A stretch of DNA of 64,000 nt from Dicyema japonicum (lineage: Eukaryota; Animalia; Dicyemida), in contig RDEW01000026.1 of assembly GCA_011109175.1 (NCBI GenBank), positions 637,695 to 701,694 on the forward strand, written 5' to 3'. Every line of letters begins with the position of its first letter. Position 1 is the stretch's first letter. The position numbers were made by a program, and so were the translations under genes. The notes below the pieces were generated by a model. The model worked only from the letters and a program-made list of their open reading frames with translations. It made no database searches and was not told where the DNA came from. Positions 9,150 to 30,844 of the stretch are shown here, piece after piece.

Positions 9150-12100
9150 TAATCTATGCCATATCACAAATAGTTTACAATACCTTTTGTAGATAGTGTA
9201 ATGATCATAATTATCTAATTTATTACAATAATATGGATAAAACTATAGTGCATATCAAGTCACAACGAGATGAACAAAGTACGAATGCAGAAAAAAAGAA
9301 GTCATGAATCTATACAAGATATAAATATTCGCCAAGAAAATGAAAGACACCGGAAGCAGTTAACAAGAAGTCAAGAAACTGAAGAAAAAAAAACTTATCC
9401 GACAAGAAACAGACAGAAAAAGGAAGCAGTTGACAAGAAGTCAAGAAAATGAAGAAAGAAAACTTATCCGACAAGAAATAGACAAAAAAAGGAAAAAGTT
9501 GACAAGAAATCAAGAAATTGAAGAAATAAAAATTATCCGTCAAGAAACAGACAGATTAAGAACCGTTACAATGAGAAGCCAACAAAATCAAGAAGAACGT
9601 TATATAGAAAATCATGAAATTATACCACGAAGGAATGCGAGGTTATATAATCCTGAATTATTGGGTAATCTAGGATTTAATTATGCTGCAGCTAATGATT
9701 TTAGATGTTTGGAGAATATCGGCACTATGTCCGATGTATGTAAATTTTGTTCGGCACTAAAATTTAAAGGGAAAACTACAGGCATGTGTTGCAGTCTCGG
9801 TCAGGTAGATTTGCCTGCCTTATTGATTCCACCAGAACCACTATTGACGCTATTAAGAAATGAATTACCAACCTCGAAGCATTTTATTGAAAATATTCTA
9901 AAGTATAATAATTTTTCTTATGACATCGTTTGGAACAAACGGTAATTTTATTTATAAGGGTTATATGCCTACATATAAGGTTCTTGGTCAAGTTTATCAT
10001 AGGATGGGGTCACTACTCCCAAATGTAGGAGAGCAACATAGCTTTTTACAAATATATTTTTTAGAAAGTTTTGAGGATCAGTCAACAAGAAGATTAGAAA
10101 CAGAGCCACAATTACGTCACTCTATAACTAGCATGTTACAAAACATGTTAATTGAACATAATTCATATATTTTATCTTTTAGGAGTGTTATGCTGACTAC
10201 AAAAGAAAAGGACTACAAAGTAATTATTCATGCAGATAAGGCACCTACGGGAGTTCATGAAGGACGGTACAACACACCAAGCTCTAATCAGGTTGAGGTT
10301 TTAATAGTTGGCCAAGAATATGATAAACGAGATATTATCGTTAATAATAAAGACAGTGGACTACGAAGAATTTCAGAAACACATCGTTCTTATGATGCTC
10401 TACAGTACCCTCTGATATTTTTAAGAGGGGAAAAAGGATATAATTTTAAGCTTATGCAGCGAAATCCATCTACAGGACAAAACACAAATAAAAAAATTAG
10501 CTGTATGGCATTTTACTCTTATAGATTCATGTTAAAAAAAGAAAAATTTAATACTATTCATCGAACAGGCCAATTGTTTGATCAATATTTAGTTGATATG
10601 TATGCGAAGATTGAATCAGAGATACTATTATACTTTCGTTTAAATCAACGAAAACTTAGAGCAGAAGAATATATACATCTAAGAGATGCGATTATTAATG
10701 ATGGTAATGTTTCTGATATAGGTCAAATGATCATATTACCCTCATCATTTACGGGAGGGCCAAGATATATGCATGAACGAACACAAGATGCAATGACGTA
10801 CGTAAGAAATTACGGAACACCGGATTTGTTTATCACTTTTACATGTAATCCAAAATGGCCAGAAATTAGTGATAACATATTTATAGGGCAAAAGTACGAG
10901 AATAGACATGATATAATTGCAAGAGTTTCTAGACAGAAAATTATGAAACTGATGGATCTAATTACGAAGAGTCATATATATGGTAAGACACGATGCCATA
11001 TGTACACAGTTGAATGGCAGAAAAGAGGACTTCCACATGCACACATTTTAATATGTTTAGTTGACAAAATTAGGCCTACTGAAATTGAAGACTGCATATC
11101 CGCAGAAATTAAAAATCCAGAAGAAAATCCGGAATTATATGAAACCATCAGGAAAAATATGATACATGGACAATGTGGAATTCTTAATAGGTCTTCACCA
11201 TGTATGAAAGACGATAAGTGTAGTAAAGGATATCCAAAAGAATTCTTTTTTATCACTCGAACGGGAGAAAACGGGTATCCTCTTTACCGTAGGAGAAGGC
11301 CAACTGATGGGGGTATATAGTGACTATTAACGAAGGCTAGGTAAATGAAATAACAGTGGATAATAGGTGGGTAGTACCTTTTAGTCCACTGTTATGTAAA
11401 ATTTTTAGTGATCATATAAATGTAGAATTCTGTAATTCAATTAAATCAATTAAATATGCTTGCAAATACATCAACAAGGGGTCAGGTCAGGCAGTTTTTA
11501 CTATAGAAGGACAGGATGAGGTTACACAATACATGCATGGGAGATATATTTGCAGCAGTGAGGCTGCGTGGAAAATTTTTGGATTTCCCATACATGATAG
11601 ATATCCTTTGGTAATGGATTTGAGTACACTTGGAAAATGTACAAAGAGTTTACTTCAATGAAGAAAACGTAAAAGACCAAATGCAAACCCCAAAGAATTC
11701 TACGCTTATGGATTTTTTTAGACTTTGTACACAAGATACATTTGCAAAAACATTATTATATTGTGAAATTCCTAGATACTAGACATGGGAAACTACCGGT
11801 AAGAAATTCAAACGAAGAATAAGAGGAGAACCAGTGAATGGATATCCAGGGATTGTAAGTAGTGATGCATTGGGCAGGGTGTACACAGTTCACCCTAATA
11901 ACTCCGAATGTTATTGTGTTAGGTTACTTCTGCATACCATCCGAGGACCGAAATCTTTTACTGATTTAAAGACAGTCGATGGAGTAATCTACGCAACATA
12001 TAGATAAGCCTGTTTTAAATTGGGACTTTTAGAAGATGACAAAAGCTTGGACGACGCATTGACCGAAGCTGGGATTTTCAATATGCCATCACATATTAGA

Positions 12101-13560
12101 TATTTATTTACATTGATGTTGGCATATTGTAATATATCAAATCCTCTACAACTTTGGGAGAAACATAAAGAAATAATGTGTGAAGATATATTAAAGAGGG
12201 ACACAAAAATAGATTCTAACGAGGACATTTTTAATGAAGGATTACTAATCATTAATAGATTATCGAATCAGGTGATTGGGAAAAATCTAAATGAGTACGG
12301 ATTTACCGGTAACAGTCAAAATACTGCAAAAAATTTGGAATGTGAAAAATATAATTTAGAAGAACTACATCAAATAATAAAAGAAAGGGAACAGAATTTA
12401 TTGGAAGGTCAGTCAAGAATCTCACTGAAATAAACAGAAATATTGAAGAAAATGATGGAAAGATATTTTTTTATAGATGCACCAGGAAGTACAGGTAAGA
12501 CATATTTGTTAAATCTATTGTTAGCAAAGGCTAGATGCAATCATAAAATAGCCATAGCAGTTGCATCTACAGGTATTGCGGCTACGCTTTTAGATGGTGG
12601 TCGAATAGCGCATTTAATGTTCAAACTACTATTAAATCTAGCAAGAGATATGGACCCAGTTTGTAGCATTAAAGGAAATTCACTTATTGGGACTATTATA
12701 CGTGATTGTGATCTAATAGTATGGGATGAGTGTACAATGGTAAGTAAAGAGCATTTGAAGCAGTTGATAAAACTTTTCGCGACATAAAACACTCTGATAT
12801 ACCGTTTGGTGGAGCGGTATTAGTATTAGCAGGTGATTTTAGACGGACACTGCCTATTATTCATAGAGGAACACCAGCAGATGAATTAAATGCATGTCTA
12901 AAATCATCGTATTTGTGGTCTTTTGTAAAAAAGGTAAGTTTAGATGTAAATATTCGACCACAAAACAAGTCAGAATTAAATTAACCGGGTTGGAACGTAT
13001 TTATAAATCTGTCGATGTAATTATGGATCAAGAATCAGTATGTGAATATCCTGTGGAATTTTTAAATTCTTTAGAACCGTCAGGGATGCCTCATCATACT
13101 TTAAAATTAAAAGTAGGAGCGCCAGTTGTTCTATTACGAAATTTAGAATCTCCAAGGTTATGTAGTGGTACAAGATTGGTAGTAAGAAATTTGATGTTTA
13201 ATATTATAGAAGCATCGATATTAACGGGGCGAAATAAAGGAGAAGACGTTTATATTCCAAGAATTCCGATAATTTCAGATGAATTACCATTTAGATTTAA
13301 GAGACTACAATTTCAATTGAAATTGAGTTTCGCAATGACAATCAACAAATCACAGGGACAAACTCTTAAAGTAGTAGGTTTATATTTAGCAAGTGAATGT
13401 TTTGCACATGGACAGTTATATGTAGGTTGTTCTAGAGTAGGTGAACGAGAAAACCTATTCATATACACAAAGGACGGTCGTACAAGCAATGTTGTATATC
13501 AACAAGCATTACAATAAGATAATTGATAATTTTTACTATAACAATCAGTTTTTTAATAAA
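9150..13560 (+). mobile_element. Helitron (Rep + PIF1-like helicase), frameshifted; termini uncertain
   Basis: Rep motifs PDLFITFTCNPKW, VEWQKRGLPHAHIL and YACKYINKG. Helicase motifs DAPGSTGKT, IVWDECTM, SFAMTINKSQGQTL and GQLYVGCSRV. ORF pieces run 9270-13517; part of the helicase appears deleted near 12930-12990. Confidence 0.95.
9363..9570 (+). repeat. 69-bp (23-aa) coding tandem repeat, 3 full units plus degenerate flanks, at the Helitron N-terminus
   Basis: Units TRSQETEEKKLIRQETDRKRKQL / TRSQENEERKLIRQEIDKKRKKL / TRNQEIEEIKIIRQETDRLRTVT. Confidence 0.85.
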
Positions 13561-20419: not shown

Positions 20420-21470
20420 TCTATTCTTTTGATCTGGAATAGTAATCCCAATCCAGAAACCAAACAAGCAATTGACCCATTGGAAAACCTACGATTGATA
20501 ATCTTTTTCAATACTCTACGTAAAATTTTGGCATTGGTTACACTGATCGCGTCAAGGATCTAGTGAACGACTATCTCGCACCAAGTCATAGTGGATTCAG
20601 GGCAGGGAGATCAATAACTTTATAGTAAGGACCCACATGTGCTGTCTGTTAATCAAAGGTACCAAAACACAACTACAAACCTTGGCAGAGACTTATCGAG
20701 GGCCTACGACACAGTGCTTCGAGGTCTACTATTGAAGACAGTGGAAGGATTTCTGGACTCTGACTCTGTGAAAATGATAAGAGCTCTCCTATCAAACACG
20801 AGCTTGAGTTCGAATTGGCAAAACTGCGTAAAGAGAATTCCTATATAATGTGGGTATTCCTCAAGGGGAATCCTCTGTCCTTTTCTATTTATCATATACT
20901 TGGAAACGGCGCTACCTGATCGAAGATTTTATGAAAGTAACATAGAAGAATCCTTTTATGCTGATGAATTCAACTTCATATCGAGAGATAAATCATTCTT
21001 ATTCACCTATCGGAAGTAGATCCTAATAAACTCAAAAATGGTAACTAACCATAATCATTCCAGTTAAGGCTATAAAATACCTTTGTTAAACCGGTCCTGC
21101 TATATAATTAATCAGCGTGAGCAATGTTCAAGGTTGGAGAACAGAAGATAGACTTCTTTCATTGAATGTAGTTGAGGAGAATCGATTTAAATTGGCCAAG
21201 AAAAATAAGCAAGAAAGCTTTATATAATGTTTGTTGCTCCCTTGAGTCTCGAGATCACTGATTTGAGATGGAGGTTTTTCGACATATAATGAGAATGAAA
21301 ATAGATCCCACAACTAATATAGCGATGGAGGAGTATTTCGTTGAGACTTGATCATTTTCTGTGGGTGCCCGCGAATTACACTCCTAAGTATGCCAAAATG
21401 AAATGAGGAGAACATCTGGACGACTTGAGAGAGTTACGCATGACCGCGAAAGGTGGAATCGCTTAGTTTA
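20420..21470 (+). mobile_element. Degenerate RTE-clade LINE related to 27723-30745
   Basis: HSGFRAGRS, DLSRAYDTV, YADEFNFI and RWRF...HIMRM...NIAMEEYF motifs. Confidence 0.7.
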
Positions 21471-21845
21471 ATAGTTTATAACGCCTAAGAATGAAATTAT
21501 AACCATTATGGATTTAATAATGTCTTGACATCTCAAAGACTTTTGATAGGGTAAGCCACGATAACGTAATTCTCTATTTCGGAGAGGAAGCCCTGGAGAT
21601 CTTGTATAATGGATAAAGTAATACTCAAAAAGATTCCTAGAGTTTACCAAATGAAATACTGAGGGTTCTACTCTCAGCCAACTATTATTTAACTGATGGG
21701 TTTTTATGACGTTTTGATTATCTCCTTAAAGTTAAAAATAGTATTTCAAATCAAATTTGTGTATTTTAGTGCTAATAAAACAATATCTTTAATAAAATGT
21801 CGCCTAGGTAAACTAATTGGAAATTTTATATTTTAAATGTTACAA

Positions 21846-22725
21846 TCATGGCAATTCCTTAATTGAAAAATCATTTAAGCTAATTTCATCCTTTATAAGT
21901 TTCCTCTCTATATCTAGACATATTCAATTAACTGTACTTTTTAATAAAAATTCACAATATCTTAGTTTTTTCATGACTTCTTTAAGGATAAAGTTTGACC
22001 CCTTGTTTTTTTGGGTTTCCCTAATTTGAAATTCCTCATATTCGATCATTTTATTATTGCTGAAATCATAAATAATATTTTACAGAATTTTAAAGGTTAA
22101 AGACTGAGAGAGAGCAATCAATCGCTCCGTGAGCGTCCTCAATGAATCTGCTTGTAAACAACATGAAAAAGTATGATTTGACTATAATTAGAACGTATAA
22201 AACTGATATATGCGATCTTTTATCAGAATACATATTCTGGTCCTCAAATCCGAAAGATTCATTTACGATATTATCAACACTTTTAAAACTATCCCGTAAT
22301 CCACTTTTCCCACTTTTATAAACAATATTTTTTGATCTTCCATTATGTTTATCAATTTTATATTTTTGCCAAATTTCATTGATTTTTGTTTGATAATCTC
22401 TTTCTTTCACATTTAATGAATCTTTCATTTCATCAATTCTTTTCTGGTTTTGTCGATCAGTTGAAATTTTACTAAATTTTTAAATATTTAAAAACTCATC
22501 TGTTTTAGTTTGTACAATACTTTTGTTGTTCATTGCATTATTCAAATTATTAAGAACATTGGCTGTTTGGTCAAATAAATATTTAATTTCCTTTATGTCT
22601 GAATGGGGGGTATTTTTCAAATCATCTTTATATTTTTTATTCTCATTGGTGGAGAAAAAGTTTTTCAGTTTCTTGAATTTACAATCTGATTTATTAAAAA
22701 TTTTAATAATACTTATTGGTGACAT
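21846..22725 (-). CDS. Spliced host gene, 5 exons, 261-aa K/N/E-rich protein of unknown function
   Basis: Exons (minus) 22725-22496, 22471-22204, 22181-22084, 22059-21938, 21913-21846. GT-AG introns of 24, 22, 24 and 24 nt. Phases join into one 786-nt ORF MSPISIIK...KTDDKIS...SHISSNHTFSCCLQ...KILNNK...LKNIERK...KELP*. Confidence 0.8.
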
Positions 22726-23139
22726 TAAAGTTTATTAGTAATAACACGTGGTTACTATGGTGATAATAATTAAACTTTGGATAGTTGCCTTATATTAAAT
22801 TATTCCAAGACCAAGGGTAGACCAAGAGTAAAATCATTCCTATATCCTTATATTATTAATGTGGTGCTATGTGGTTATTCGTTTCAAAATTTTTTTTCCT
22901 TCCCTCTGATAACGTCACTGGATACACCTTACACAGTAGACGCCCAATGGTATTCAACTATTCTTTCTGTCGGGAGACAGTTTCGTTCTCTGGCGACGAG
23001 TTCTGGAACCAACCGCAGCTCCCCGGAAATTGTCCTCTAGATCACTGTTCTCGTGGAAGTTCTCCTGGAACGCGTCAGGATAAAGGGATTAGTTAGTTTT
23101 GTTTTACCCTTAGTCATTGGAATAATTTATTTTATTATT

Positions 23140-23512: not shown

Positions 23513-25259
23513 CAGTACGACCCCGCCTCAATAGAAAAGTGCCCCAAATATAGAGGGTATATAATTCTTACATTTAAAACTATTTTTAGATAATAAAATA
23601 TGTTGTTTCGATAAAAAAGATGATTTAATTTATTTATGAGAAATAATCAGTTATTTTGAACCCAGTATAATACTCATTTCTCAGAATCTTTGAAATTTTT
23701 ATTCTGAATTCATAGTATTCTTTGAGCCTTACAGGGCAAGTATTGAATAAAGAAGTTTCGAGATTATTCATTTTTCTTATTGAATCTTTTTAATATAACT
23801 AATCTCACCATTTTCATTGTACAAAGTCTCATTATCTTCAACTCCGATTATTTCAAGTTCCATTTACCCTGAAACATGCTTATCAATTAATTCAGATGCT
23901 TTTTTTTGAATTAATATCACGAACACATGTTCTCTGTTCGTTTATTTTCATCCAACAATTGACAATCGTTGTTGTTGTTACTCGATCACAGGCTTCTCCT
24001 ACAAATGCAATTATTTGCCTCATATTAATCTTCAATAGGGTCGAATAGTATTCATTTACATCGTCAAGACATATCATTTCATAAAGAACGTTGTTGTAAT
24101 ATGTCTTGAAAGAGTTTATGATTCGCACATCTAAAGGTTGAAGAAATGCTGCTGTATTTTTAGGAAATTTAAGAAATAATAAGTTTGAATATTCTTGATA
24201 TTTTTGGCACGGCGCATTATCCATAAAAATCAAAATTTTTCTGTTTTTTGACCATTTCAAAGTTTTTTTTTGTAACCATTTATCAAAATTATCAGTTGTC
24301 ATCCATCATATTTTGACGCTGTGTAAAAAACCTAAAAAAACCTAATAAAATATACCCCATAATGCTCAGTTTGTAGATTTTTAACCATCTTGGCGATTTA
24401 AATTTTCCGATAACAAGGGGCTTTAATTTCTCACCTTCAAGACTGCAGCATAAAAGAACTGAAACTCGTTCTTTGCTTTTCGTTTTACCAAAACAATCAT
24501 CATTTGAAGAGACAATTGATTTACATGAATTTTAACAAAAAGAGAGGTTTCGTCGCAGTTAAAAATATCTTTTTTCTCGTATTTATCAAATAAATTGTCG
24601 TAATCGTTAAAAAAAATCTTCGACTTTATTTCTGTCACATAAGTTCTTTTCACCCGAAATTACTTTGAACAATAATTCATGACACTTTTTTTAAATCGAT
24701 CCAACCATCCATTTGATGCTTTGAAATCATTGAAGTCAAGATTAGCTGCAATTTTTTTGCCATAGTTTTGAGAAATCTTGAAAATAAAATACCATCCGTT
24801 CTCAAATTTTTAAATACTTCGAATACTAATCGATCGATTCGAATATAAATATTTGATTCGAACTTCTTAGATGAGAGTTCATCAGAGCATATTTGTGTTT
24901 TTGAAACCCCTTTTCCAATTTCTTTTTTTAATTCGTGAGACAGTTCCTTTTCCAATATTGTATAAGTGACAAATTTTTATTTCTGACATATTTTCTTCAT
25001 TAAAGAATCGGAAATCTTCTGTTTCAGGTGGCGACTAAGCTTCGCAGGCATGCTTAAATAAAAATGAAATAATAAATTTTAATATTATCGATTGAAAAAG
25101 TGCTCCAATAAGCGGAGTTTAGTATTTTAAATTTAAGCTTCCTATTGGTCAAAAATGTAAAAAAATGTAAAAATCATTCAAAATAATATTTATTAAAAAA
25201 ATCGCCCCAAAACAGAGGGTGCTCCAAGGCCAGGGTTTTATTGGGGCGGGGTCGTACCG
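23513..25259 (-). mobile_element. Complete 1747-bp pogo/Tigger element with both TIRs and TA flanks; transposase degenerate
   Basis: TA|CAGTACGACCCCGCCTCAATAGAA ... TTTTATTGGGGCGGGGTCGTACCG|TA; minus frames give IFNCDETSLF, FMDNAPC and FLQPLDV. Confidence 0.9.
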
Positions 25260-27696: not shown

Positions 27697-27722
27697 AATC
27701 CACGCAGCAGGCTTCCTCAACT
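27697..27722. repeat. Target-site duplication, left copy (right copy 30746-30771)
   Basis: 26/26 identical; removing the insertion restores the CRE end ...GFLN TGA CATTTGT as seen in the uninterrupted copy at 19290-19485. Confidence 0.95.
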
Positions 27723-27765
27723 TATTATTTATTTTTATTTAAAGCACTCCCGAGAAGTCATAAAA

Positions 27766-29035
27766 TTAATCAAGCCTCCCTTGTGCCGTATTTCTAGCCA
27801 TCCTCTCTATCAGCCTTTTCCAGGACCCTCTACTTCGTGCCAGTTCCCTTAAGGTATCTAGGTCGTCTGCGGAAGTGAGCTTCAGTCCCACAGCCGACAG
27901 GTCTCCATTCAAAATAGTTGGGAGTGTGACTCTTGGTCTTCCACGGAAACCGGCTCCCGTATGCATTAGGTAGTTTTCCATGGCGATATTCGCGGGTACT
28001 TGAGCATTTAGACGTAAGATATGTCCAAAGAGACTCCATCTTGATCTGAAGATCTCCTCGGATAGTATACCAGATTTGCACTTCGAGTAGAGGTCATTGT
28101 TTGAGATCTTCTTAGGCCACTTGATCTTGATTACTGATTTCAATTGTGTCCTGTGGAAAGCGTCAAGACGGTCCATCTCTTGTTTAGAGATTCCCCAAGT
28201 GCCTGAATTGTAGGTCAGGACGGGGATGACAAAAGCCTTATATATTCTGAGTTTGGTGTTTAATCCCATCCTCTTCTTATGACCCCACATATTCGATACT
28301 TTCTTTAGTGCACACATTGCGAGGATTTTCCTCCGAGAAACATCTTCTGAGTCCCCGAGAAGCGAACCCACCTTCTTTTGCTTTCTCCAAGACTCGTCCG
28401 ATCTTCGATCATTGCGTGTAAGTGTTGTGAACTCTGTTTTATCGGTGTTAACGGTTAAGAACCATTTCGAGAATACGTGTGGAAGAACGTTAAGCATGTG
28501 TTGAAGTACTTGAATATCCTCAGAAACAAAGTCCAGGTCGTCCGCGTAGATTATCTCGTTATAATTGTTGCCAACCAGGGGTCTGAACTCTCTTAGTGCG
28601 GCCTCAAGGTAGACAATAAAGAGGACCGGGGATAGTGAGTCCCCCTGTGGAACTCCACGTGAGGTCGAAAAAAAGTTAGAGGTAGAGTCACCAATTTTGA
28701 CGGCAAGTTGAGTGTTCCGCATGAGTAAGTGTATTATTTTGACATCGTCAGGCAGTAGAAAACTCTCCAACACTTCCATAAGTTTTCCACGGTCCACCGA
28801 GTCGAACGCACGGGACATGTCGATACCAAGTATCTCAATAGATTTTTTGTATTTTTGGCACAGGGCACAATACCACCTGTGCCCCCATACCACGTCAGCC
28901 GTGGACCTGCCCGTCCGGAATCCACTTTGGCCGTCCGAAAGAAATATGTTCACCCTCTCCTTTATTCGGTTTAAAGCAATGAGGGATAATGTTTTTCGTA
29001 TGGAGGTTAGGAGTATAATAGGTCTGAAGTTGTGA
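27766..29035 (-). CDS. RTE ORF, RT half
   Basis: Open frame NFRPIILLTSIRK...YADDLDF...RGRPRVTLP...GRLD*. Confidence 0.85.
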
Positions 29036-30707
29036 GGGGGCCTTTACTTTTTCCCGGTTTTTGTAGTGGAATTAGCCACCCTTTTCCCAGTTCCAGTTCA
29101 TCTGCACCCTCGAGAGACCGGTTGAAAATGTTAGTAATCATTTCAATTAGCTCCTCCGGGCCGTATTGTAAAAGTTCTGCAGTAATGAAGTCTGGTCCGG
29201 CAGATCTTCCGGTATTTAATTTTTTAATAGCTTGTTGAGTTTCGGATATGGTAATAGGGCTAGTTAGAGTGTACTTGTAAGACTTCCGAGATTTCATTGC
29301 TTGGTCAGCCGCGTCCTGTTTGTTGAACATAAGGTCAAAATGGGATGCCAGAACGTTTGCTTTGTTAATGGTCCCGATAACGTCGTGACCAAGGTTGTCA
29401 TGGACAGTTAACGAAATTGGACAGTTTTCTCTGCTAAGAAGCCGGATTGCTTTGAACATTCTTGGTCCGTTCTTGTACTTTAATATGTCTGAGATTTTCT
29501 CCTCAGCTTCATTTTTGGCAAGGAATCTTTGTATTTGTTTGATCTTCGTTAAGACTCTCCCTCTCTGGGTGCGCAGTACTTTGATATCTTCCGGAGCGTT
29601 TGTGTTTTCCATCCGGAGTCTGAGCTCTTTCTGTGTTACAGAGAGTTGTCCGATATCCGGATTACATTGTTTGTGACGAGATTTGGTGATGTGACCAAGC
29701 ACACTAAAGGCTGTGTTTTGGATAGCAACCACTATTTCATCCCATAAGCTGTTTGTCGGCTGATTTTGGTTAATACTGTTGATGCTATCTCTCAGAACTG
29801 CACTATAACGACATTTGGTGGATTCTTCGTAGCGTAACCTCTCAGTGTCGAAACGTACTGAGGTAAGGCCTTTGTGTTTCCCGTGTATTCCATGGATTCT
29901 TTTAAGTACTAGCCGGGCGACCACAAGTTTATGATCGCTACTTGTTTCAAGTCCACCGTAAGATCTCGAGTCCTGTAGGAGGGCCTTCTGATGTTGCTTG
30001 CAGATAATATAGTCGATCTGATTGTATATATTGACTGTGTTTCCAGATTTGCCTTTTCTGGTACCAACCCACGTGGTCCTGTGTCTTGCCGGGTGCTTGA
30101 AACAAGTGTTGCATATGAGTAGGTTGAATGCCGTGCAAAATTGTATTAATGCCTCTCCGGGGATGTTACGGCGGTTTCTACCGTGGGATCCAATACACGT
30201 TTCACCAGGTCTTGCTTTTCCGGCCCTGGCGTTCCAGTCCCCGGCGATAAAAAGAAAGTAAGAGGATGAAAGTGAGTTGTACACACTTGTGAGAGTAGAG
30301 TAAAACGTATCCAGTTCTTCGATATTCGTTGATACACGTGCTCCGGTTGGGGCATATACATTTATGATGGAGATCACTGAGTTGAGTTTGTTTCCGCATT
30401 TGATTTGTAACACCGCGACACGGTCAGATACTGCCCATACTCTTGAGACACAGTGAAACAAGTGCCGATGAACAGCAAATCCGAGCCCATAGTGCCTGCA
30501 GTCTGGTGTGAGGGTCAAAAGGTAAAAATTCTGAAACAGTTCTGCTGATTGTTCGGTTATTTTCGTCTCTTGCAAACAACAGACAGAGATGTTGTATTTA
30601 CTCAGATCACGCGCCAATTGTTGTTTCTTGTAGCACTGATTGAGGCCTCGGCAGTTGAGGGATCCAAGTGTGAGGGGAGAAACTGGTAAGCAATACGAAG
30701 AAGACAT
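29007..30707 (-). CDS. RTE ORF, APE half (566 aa as assembled)
   Basis: Open frame with all APE motifs; adding one C at the 29036-29040 run fuses it to the RT frame (GPPHNFRPIILL), giving 980 aa. Confidence 0.85.
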   Translation of the reverse strand: MSSSYCLPVSPLTLGSLNCRGLNQCYKKQQLARDLSKYNISVCCLQETKITEQSAELFQNFYLLTLTPDCRHYGLGFAVHRHLFHCVSRVWAVSDRVAVLQIKCGNKLNSVISIINVYAPTGARVSTNIEELDTFYSTLTSVYNSLSSSYFLFIAGDWNARAGKARPGETCIGSHGRNRRNIPGEALIQFCTAFNLLICNTCFKHPARHRTTWVGTRKGKSGNTVNIYNQIDYIICKQHQKALLQDSRSYGGLETSSDHKLVVARLVLKRIHGIHGKHKGLTSVRFDTERLRYEESTKCRYSAVLRDSINSINQNQPTNSLWDEIVVAIQNTAFSVLGHITKSRHKQCNPDIGQLSVTQKELRLRMENTNAPEDIKVLRTQRGRVLTKIKQIQRFLAKNEAEEKISDILKYKNGPRMFKAIRLLSRENCPISLTVHDNLGHDVIGTINKANVLASHFDLMFNKQDAADQAMKSRKSYKYTLTSPITISETQQAIKKLNTGRSAGPDFITAELLQYGPEELIEMITNIFNRSLEGADELELGKGWLIPLQKPGKSKGPLTTSDLLYS

Positions 30708-30844
30708 AGTGCAAGTAGAGGGACGTCACCACCTCAACCAAAAAAAATCCACGCAGCAGGCTTCCTCAACTGACATTTGTTTAATTGTTAAAAAAATTAT
30801 TTTGTTTAAAAAAATTATTTATAATATTTATTATTTATTGCTGA

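Follow-up and report, generated by a model that had tools for sequence, protein, structure and literature searches.

Introns of 20-27 nt have been reported as the norm in Dicyema japonicum (PMC6736024, PMC13644364), and among animals such introns have been published only for myxobolid myxozoans and for this species (PMC13644364), in which the splice signal is reduced to GTa ... AG (PMC13644364; Hadjez et al. 2026). It has also been reported that the D. japonicum genome has 36.7% GC and 48.9% repeats, with multiple LINEs and a mean exon of 198 bp (PMC6736024; Lu et al. 2019), and that its annotation comprises 5,012 genes and 313 lineage-specific gene clusters (PMC6736024). The locus that we describe here lies on the minus strand at 22725..21846 of the window, by which we mean the whole 64-kb stretch of D. 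japonicum DNA that was analyzed. It resembles the described micro-intron genes of this species in having several introns of 22-24 nt with GT(a)...AG signals and exons of 68-268 nt, as well as in lying in a repeat-rich, LINE-full genome of ~37% GC.

The five-exon model and its chance expectation

The original prediction had taken two open reading frames that are listed separately and joined them, across four micro-introns, into one five-exon gene for a 261-aa product. We reproduced both the separate frames and the join from the sequence. On the minus strand, the program-made ORF list gives an 81-aa ORF (22480..22725) and a 112-aa ORF (22090..22428) that stand apart; the five exons of the model, when joined, make 786 nt, that is 261 codons followed by a TGA at 21846-21848. 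The gene had been called hidden, and it is indeed split in this list, although the word means only that it is invisible to a prokaryote-style ORF list.

Exon 1 (22496..22725, minus strand, as are all features of the gene; 230 nt) begins with the ATG at 22723-22725 and encodes residues 1-76 plus 2 nt; directly upstream of this ATG are two in-frame TAA codons, and there is an A at -3. Intron 1 (22472..22495, 24 nt, GT..AG) contains an in-frame TAA and leads to exon 2 (22204..22471, 268 nt, residues 77-166), in which only one frame is open. The 22-nt intron 2 (22182..22203, GT..AG) is followed by exon 3 (22084..22181, 98 nt, residues 167-198 plus 2 nt), which contains the SCCLQADSLRTLTERLIAL segment, and then by intron 3 (22060..22083, 24 nt, GTA..AG), again with an in-frame TAA. 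Exon 4 (21938..22059, 122 nt) is modeled from ORF continuity in its part below 22006. On the basis of sequence alone, a putative intron 4 (21914..21937, 24 nt, GTA..AG) and a putative exon 5 (21846..21913, 68 nt) would complete the gene, the latter with the last 22 residues and the TGA at 21846-21848. If intron 4 is not used and stays unspliced, the ORF would end at a TGA four codons on, and the product would have 243 aa. An ATTAAA hexamer read on the minus strand at 21788..21793, ~53 nt 3' of the stop, is a possible candidate for the poly(A) signal.

All four proposed introns are GT..AG, with lengths of 24, 22, 24 and 24 nt; two begin with GTA and two with GTT, and the splice signals of the gene (GTA or GTT ... 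AG) are without a polypyrimidine tract. It had been claimed that all four introns restore the frame. The ORF does stay open across them, but introns 1, 3 and 4 are 3n in length, each merely excising an in-frame stop, and a frameshift is corrected by the 22-nt intron 2 only.

Two variants of the model were rejected. An upstream start at ATG ~22836 (MILLLVYPW...) has no micro-intron path into the main frame. A ciliate code (TAA/TAG = Gln) combined with Paramecium-type introns was considered since exons 1 and 2 share a frame with one TAA between them; it was ruled out because the exons are without any TAA or TAG, the long TE ORFs of the window are uninterrupted under the standard code, and the splicing seen in RNA is real.

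Using dynamic programming, we searched the unique island that holds the gene for ATG-to-stop paths in which any GT..AG intron of 18-32 nt was allowed. The longest ORF of this free search was exactly the five-exon, 261-codon model, and the plus strand of the island gave 59 codons at most. When the sequence was shuffled 2000 times with its dinucleotides preserved, no shuffle gave as many as 261 codons (mean 75, 99th percentile 164, maximum 256), and when introns were limited to 4 or fewer the shuffle maximum was 184 codons. The statement that such a join is unlikely by chance holds in that the model is longer than all 2000 shuffles, though free searches do yield long spurious ORFs: in ~1% of shuffled AT-rich sequences of 1.5 kb, a free 18-32-nt GT..AG search gives ORFs that are 160-250 codons long, which calls for caution. 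Because the free search builds long ORFs even in shuffled sequence, micro-intron models need RNA support.

Transcription and three splice junctions

The stretch is contained in five public runs, among them three runs from one 2019 sample (X1-X3) and one run from another sample, of a 2017 study (X5). The X5 data, which are contigs and not reads, form the sole RNA-type run, and the type recorded for it is a guess ('DNA?'). We found that X1-X3 hold the complete genomic sequence of the locus at even depth. In X5, cover is limited to 22006-22551, where its depth is 25-65, and it falls to zero beyond both ends; this pattern fits cDNA rather than genomic DNA; the holes in X5 cover (22552-22725 and below 22006) carry no proof either way.

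RNA-type contigs demonstrate that the locus is transcribed and that three of its introns are spliced. A 420-nt X5 contig spanning 22006-22471 is without 24 nt from 22060 and 22 nt from 22182 and is otherwise identical; it covers exon 2 wholly, at a depth of 56.7, and also exon 3. Introns 2 and 3 are each removed in X5 at a depth of 56.7 of 56.7. Across the 420 nt confirmed by RNA a single frame is open, for 139 codons, and the other two frames are full of stops. In DNA runs X1-X3 the joined forms of introns 2 and 3 are at a depth of zero, although X2 reaches ~550x; a processed retrocopy is therefore excluded in that sample.

The ends of the X5 contigs coincide with the borders of intron 1 (22496 and 22471), and the spliced junction is marked by a loose end at 22496 whose 8 nt are those with which exon 2 begins (22464-22471). 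A further X5 contig of 76 nt (22442-22517) retains intron 1 at a depth of 30.6, vs ~57 for exon 2; in the X5 signal, intron 1 is spliced and retained about equally, with about half in each form. RNA-type cover of exon 1 comprises 22496-22551 only, the first ~175 nt of this exon being without cover, and in exon 4 it extends down to 22006 only, where an A7 run ends. Outside this cover, the putative start and stop codons, the remainder of exon 4, and the putative intron 4 and exon 5 are modeled from ORF continuity. The claim that the locus is transcribed and spliced is borne out exactly for introns 2 and 3, whose junctions the X5 contig confirms to the base, and in part for intron 1, but for intron 4 and exon 5, at the 3' end, it stands as a model only.

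Within exon 1 we also observed a deletion allele of 3 nt at 22518-22521, which is in frame (Ser-Ile to Val) and is carried by X5 at roughly half the depth.

Genomic setting and predicted product

The gene is held by a single-copy island of 1.48 kb (21435..22913) in which X2 depth is ~550 throughout. Outside the island, in 21174-21434 and beyond 22914, X2 depth is 1,700-66,000, and the sequence is high-copy and LINE-like. Because DNA depth is flat and at the single-copy level between high-copy LINE fragments, the gene is a single- or low-copy gene and not a multicopy TE gene, a call that holds for copies at least 90% alike. When the island was compared with the 64-kb window at the DNA and the protein level, the self match alone was found, and a search for terminal repeats or duplications around the island found none. 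The view of the original prediction that this is a host gene is supported by the flat single-copy depth, by the finding that nothing in the window resembles it as a paralogue or as a TE protein, and by the lack of terminal repeats. Nor does the product prove to be a fragment of a TE protein, as it has no Pfam TE domain and no likeness to the TEs of the window.

The window (GC ~37%) is dominated by mobile elements, and Rfam and tRNA scans of it were empty. A Helitron on the plus strand (9920-13517) carries a Helitron_like_N Rep (E 2e-55) and a Pif1-type helicase in separate ORFs, which may be joined by micro-introns in the manner of host genes. LINE reverse transcriptases/endonucleases are found at ~15-16 kb, 27.7-30.7 kb, 32 kb and 46 kb, and the LINE-like ORFs adjoining the island are on the strand opposite to the gene. 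On the same strand as the gene, and 1.2 kb upstream of it, lies a fragment of a pogo/Tigger-type DDE_1 transposase (23892-24302, minus strand, E 5e-15), with high-copy LINE-like sequence in between. In the repeat 3' of the island, at 21233-21396, the DNA contigs of all runs have alternative joints that skip 113-162 nt and insert 35 other letters; these joints are probably differences between repeat copies.

One of the mobile elements is an RTE-type LINE (~27697-30771, minus strand) with a 566-aa endonuclease/RT ORF at 29007-30707. The best relatives of this ORF are from Octopus sinensis (53-57% identity, E 6e-139), other matches being at 44% or less, and in a quick ML tree it is nested within the clade that six RTE proteins from O. 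sinensis form (SH-aLRT 98-99). A cephalopod such as O. sinensis is a host of the dicyemid type. A microsporidian or a myxozoan origin of the DNA was weighed and set aside, the GC of ~37%, the many LINEs, the 2017 and 2019 studies and this RTE being a better fit to D. japonicum. These similarities suggest that the RTE is common to cephalopod host and dicyemid parasite, and the sharing may possibly have come about through horizontal transfer; our literature search found no published account of RTE sharing between cephalopods and dicyemids.

The 261-aa product of the gene (30.8 kDa, pI 9.4, GRAVY -0.89) is basic, hydrophilic and rich in Lys, Asn and Ser (38, 27 and 25 residues), with a low-complexity-like composition. 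Its N-terminus is lysine-rich and amphipathic, its maximum Kyte-Doolittle 19-residue mean is 0.58, and neither a signal peptide nor a membrane segment was found in it. Single-sequence AlphaFold gave an all-helical model with three helices over residues 3-70 for exon 1 (mean pLDDT 77.7, pTM 0.36) and, for exon 2, a single long helix and after it a stretch of low confidence (pLDDT 67, pTM 0.28), so that the N-terminal ~115 residues are predicted to be helical (~3-70 and ~80-113). A probable coiled coil had also been proposed. We found no support for it in an analysis of periodicity: though helices are predicted, the 3.5-residue hydrophobic periodicity of the product is weak and patchy and gives no clear heptad pattern.

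Homology searches used pieces of the product as queries, with exons 3-5 (95 aa) compared with Pfam only, as three short pieces. Nothing in Pfam rose above the curated cut-offs (best E-value 0.0016), and nothing among PDB sequences was significant (best E-value 0.037). The 112-aa ORF had no match among 5.8 billion clustered proteins, an exhaustive HMMER search with exon 2 returned 0 matches among 1.84 billion representative proteins, and Foldseek found no match to the exon 1 model among AlphaFold DB (AFDB) clusters. ESM Atlas likewise gave nothing significant, and the recognition scores of a protein language model were as low as for shuffled sequences. The original reading, in which no family was recognized, agrees with these searches by pieces in Pfam, PDB, clustered proteins, HMMER and ESM Atlas, all of which were without a significant match. 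The large protein database is without this genome's own proteins, and even the LINE ORF of the window had no self match in it; because of this, the negative results say little on other dicyemids. The gene appears to be fast-evolving and taxon-restricted.

Alternative readings and comparison with known systems

Taken together, these results make it probable that this single-copy locus, which is transcribed and spliced, is a genuine host gene coding for a 261-aa protein. We consider it unlikely that the spliced transcript is not, or is no longer, translated, as would be the case for a lncRNA or for a young or decaying gene without a selected function. The absence of homologues and the recognition scores at the shuffled level would suit such a transcript, as would the half of transcripts that keep the stop-holding intron 1 and the up to 256 codons that the free micro-intron search builds in shuffles. 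Yet after RNA-confirmed splicing a single frame is open, for 139 codons, at a GC of 27%, at which ~8% of codons would be stops by chance; the full model has 261 open codons, a length that 0 of 2000 shuffles attain, and the sole indel polymorphism is in frame.

Less likely again is a TE gene or a TE-derived gene, for example one for a helical LINE ORF1-like protein or a DNA-transposon accessory gene. If copies at least 90% alike are counted, the island occurs once, the true TEs alongside it being 10-100x deeper, and it has no likeness elsewhere in the 64-kb window (protein or DNA), no terminal repeats or duplications and no Pfam TE domain, with the adjoining LINE-like ORFs on the opposite strand; these findings outweigh the neighborhood of a Helitron, LINE fragments and a pogo DDE_1 fragment, and the basic helical product, which is like many ORF1 proteins. 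A chance choice of GT..AG pairs in AT-rich DNA is the least credible explanation, and we regard it as very improbable. For exons 1-4 it is refuted by the junctions in the X5 contigs; intron 4 and exon 5 alone could be due to it. In its favor are the abundance of GT..AG pairs at a spacing of 18-32 nt, the 256 codons that shuffles can attain, and the fact that three of the four introns, being 3n, do no more than take out a stop. Against it, the cDNA-type contigs show three junctions precisely where the model places them, and none of the 2000 shuffles is as long as the model.

For the protein-coding host gene that we favor, the course of expression would be as follows. A unique island of 1.5 kb between LINE fragments is transcribed, and ordinary U2-type splicing would remove the three confirmed micro-introns and a probable fourth. 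We infer that translation would run from the ATG at 22725 to termination at 21846-21848, giving a protein of 261 aa, or of 243 aa should intron 4 stay in the mRNA, and polyadenylation may take place after the ATTAAA at 21788-21793. Transcripts that retain intron 1 (~half in the one RNA sample) would meet its in-frame TAA, leading either to an 81-aa product or to mRNA decay. Speculatively, the product could be a soluble intracellular protein, helical or partly disordered, with a structural, adaptor or nucleic-acid-binding role. A more far-reaching reading, which we find doubtful, is that of a very young, species-restricted gene that came from TE-flanked DNA of a drastically reduced parasite genome and whose output is tuned by inefficient splicing of intron 1; if this were true, the product of the locus would be either the complete helical protein of 261 aa or an N-terminal peptide of 81 aa.

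The gene is real but unremarkable, another lineage-restricted gene in a genome known for micro-introns, and it is possibly already included in the published gene set. The biological gain is small, namely one added orphan in a parasite genome with ~5,000 annotated genes; orphan or unannotated genes in such a genome may bear on the parasitic way of life. That a 3n intron with a stop is retained in part provides a small data point on the accuracy of 24-nt splicing in animals. In addition, a reading from sequence only recovers real micro-intron genes that prokaryote-style ORF lists split or miss.

Compared with orphan genes generally, this gene is alike in being short and compositionally biased, in its helical and disordered predictions and in its TE-rich location. 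It also shares with them the absence of a homologue outside the lineage, a status that here concerns the two large exons only. Tiny introns that are 3n and contain a stop were reportedly described in Paramecium by Jaillon et al. in 2008. All three 3n introns of our gene similarly carry an in-frame stop, so that retention truncates the product, but the likeness is partly circular (stops prompted the intron calls) and not significant (~0.13 by chance at ~8% stop codons). Paramecium differs, furthermore, in its ciliate code, the standard genetic code being used here. With the micro-intron genes of D. japonicum itself there is no structural difference, two of the introns here starting with GTT rather than GTA.
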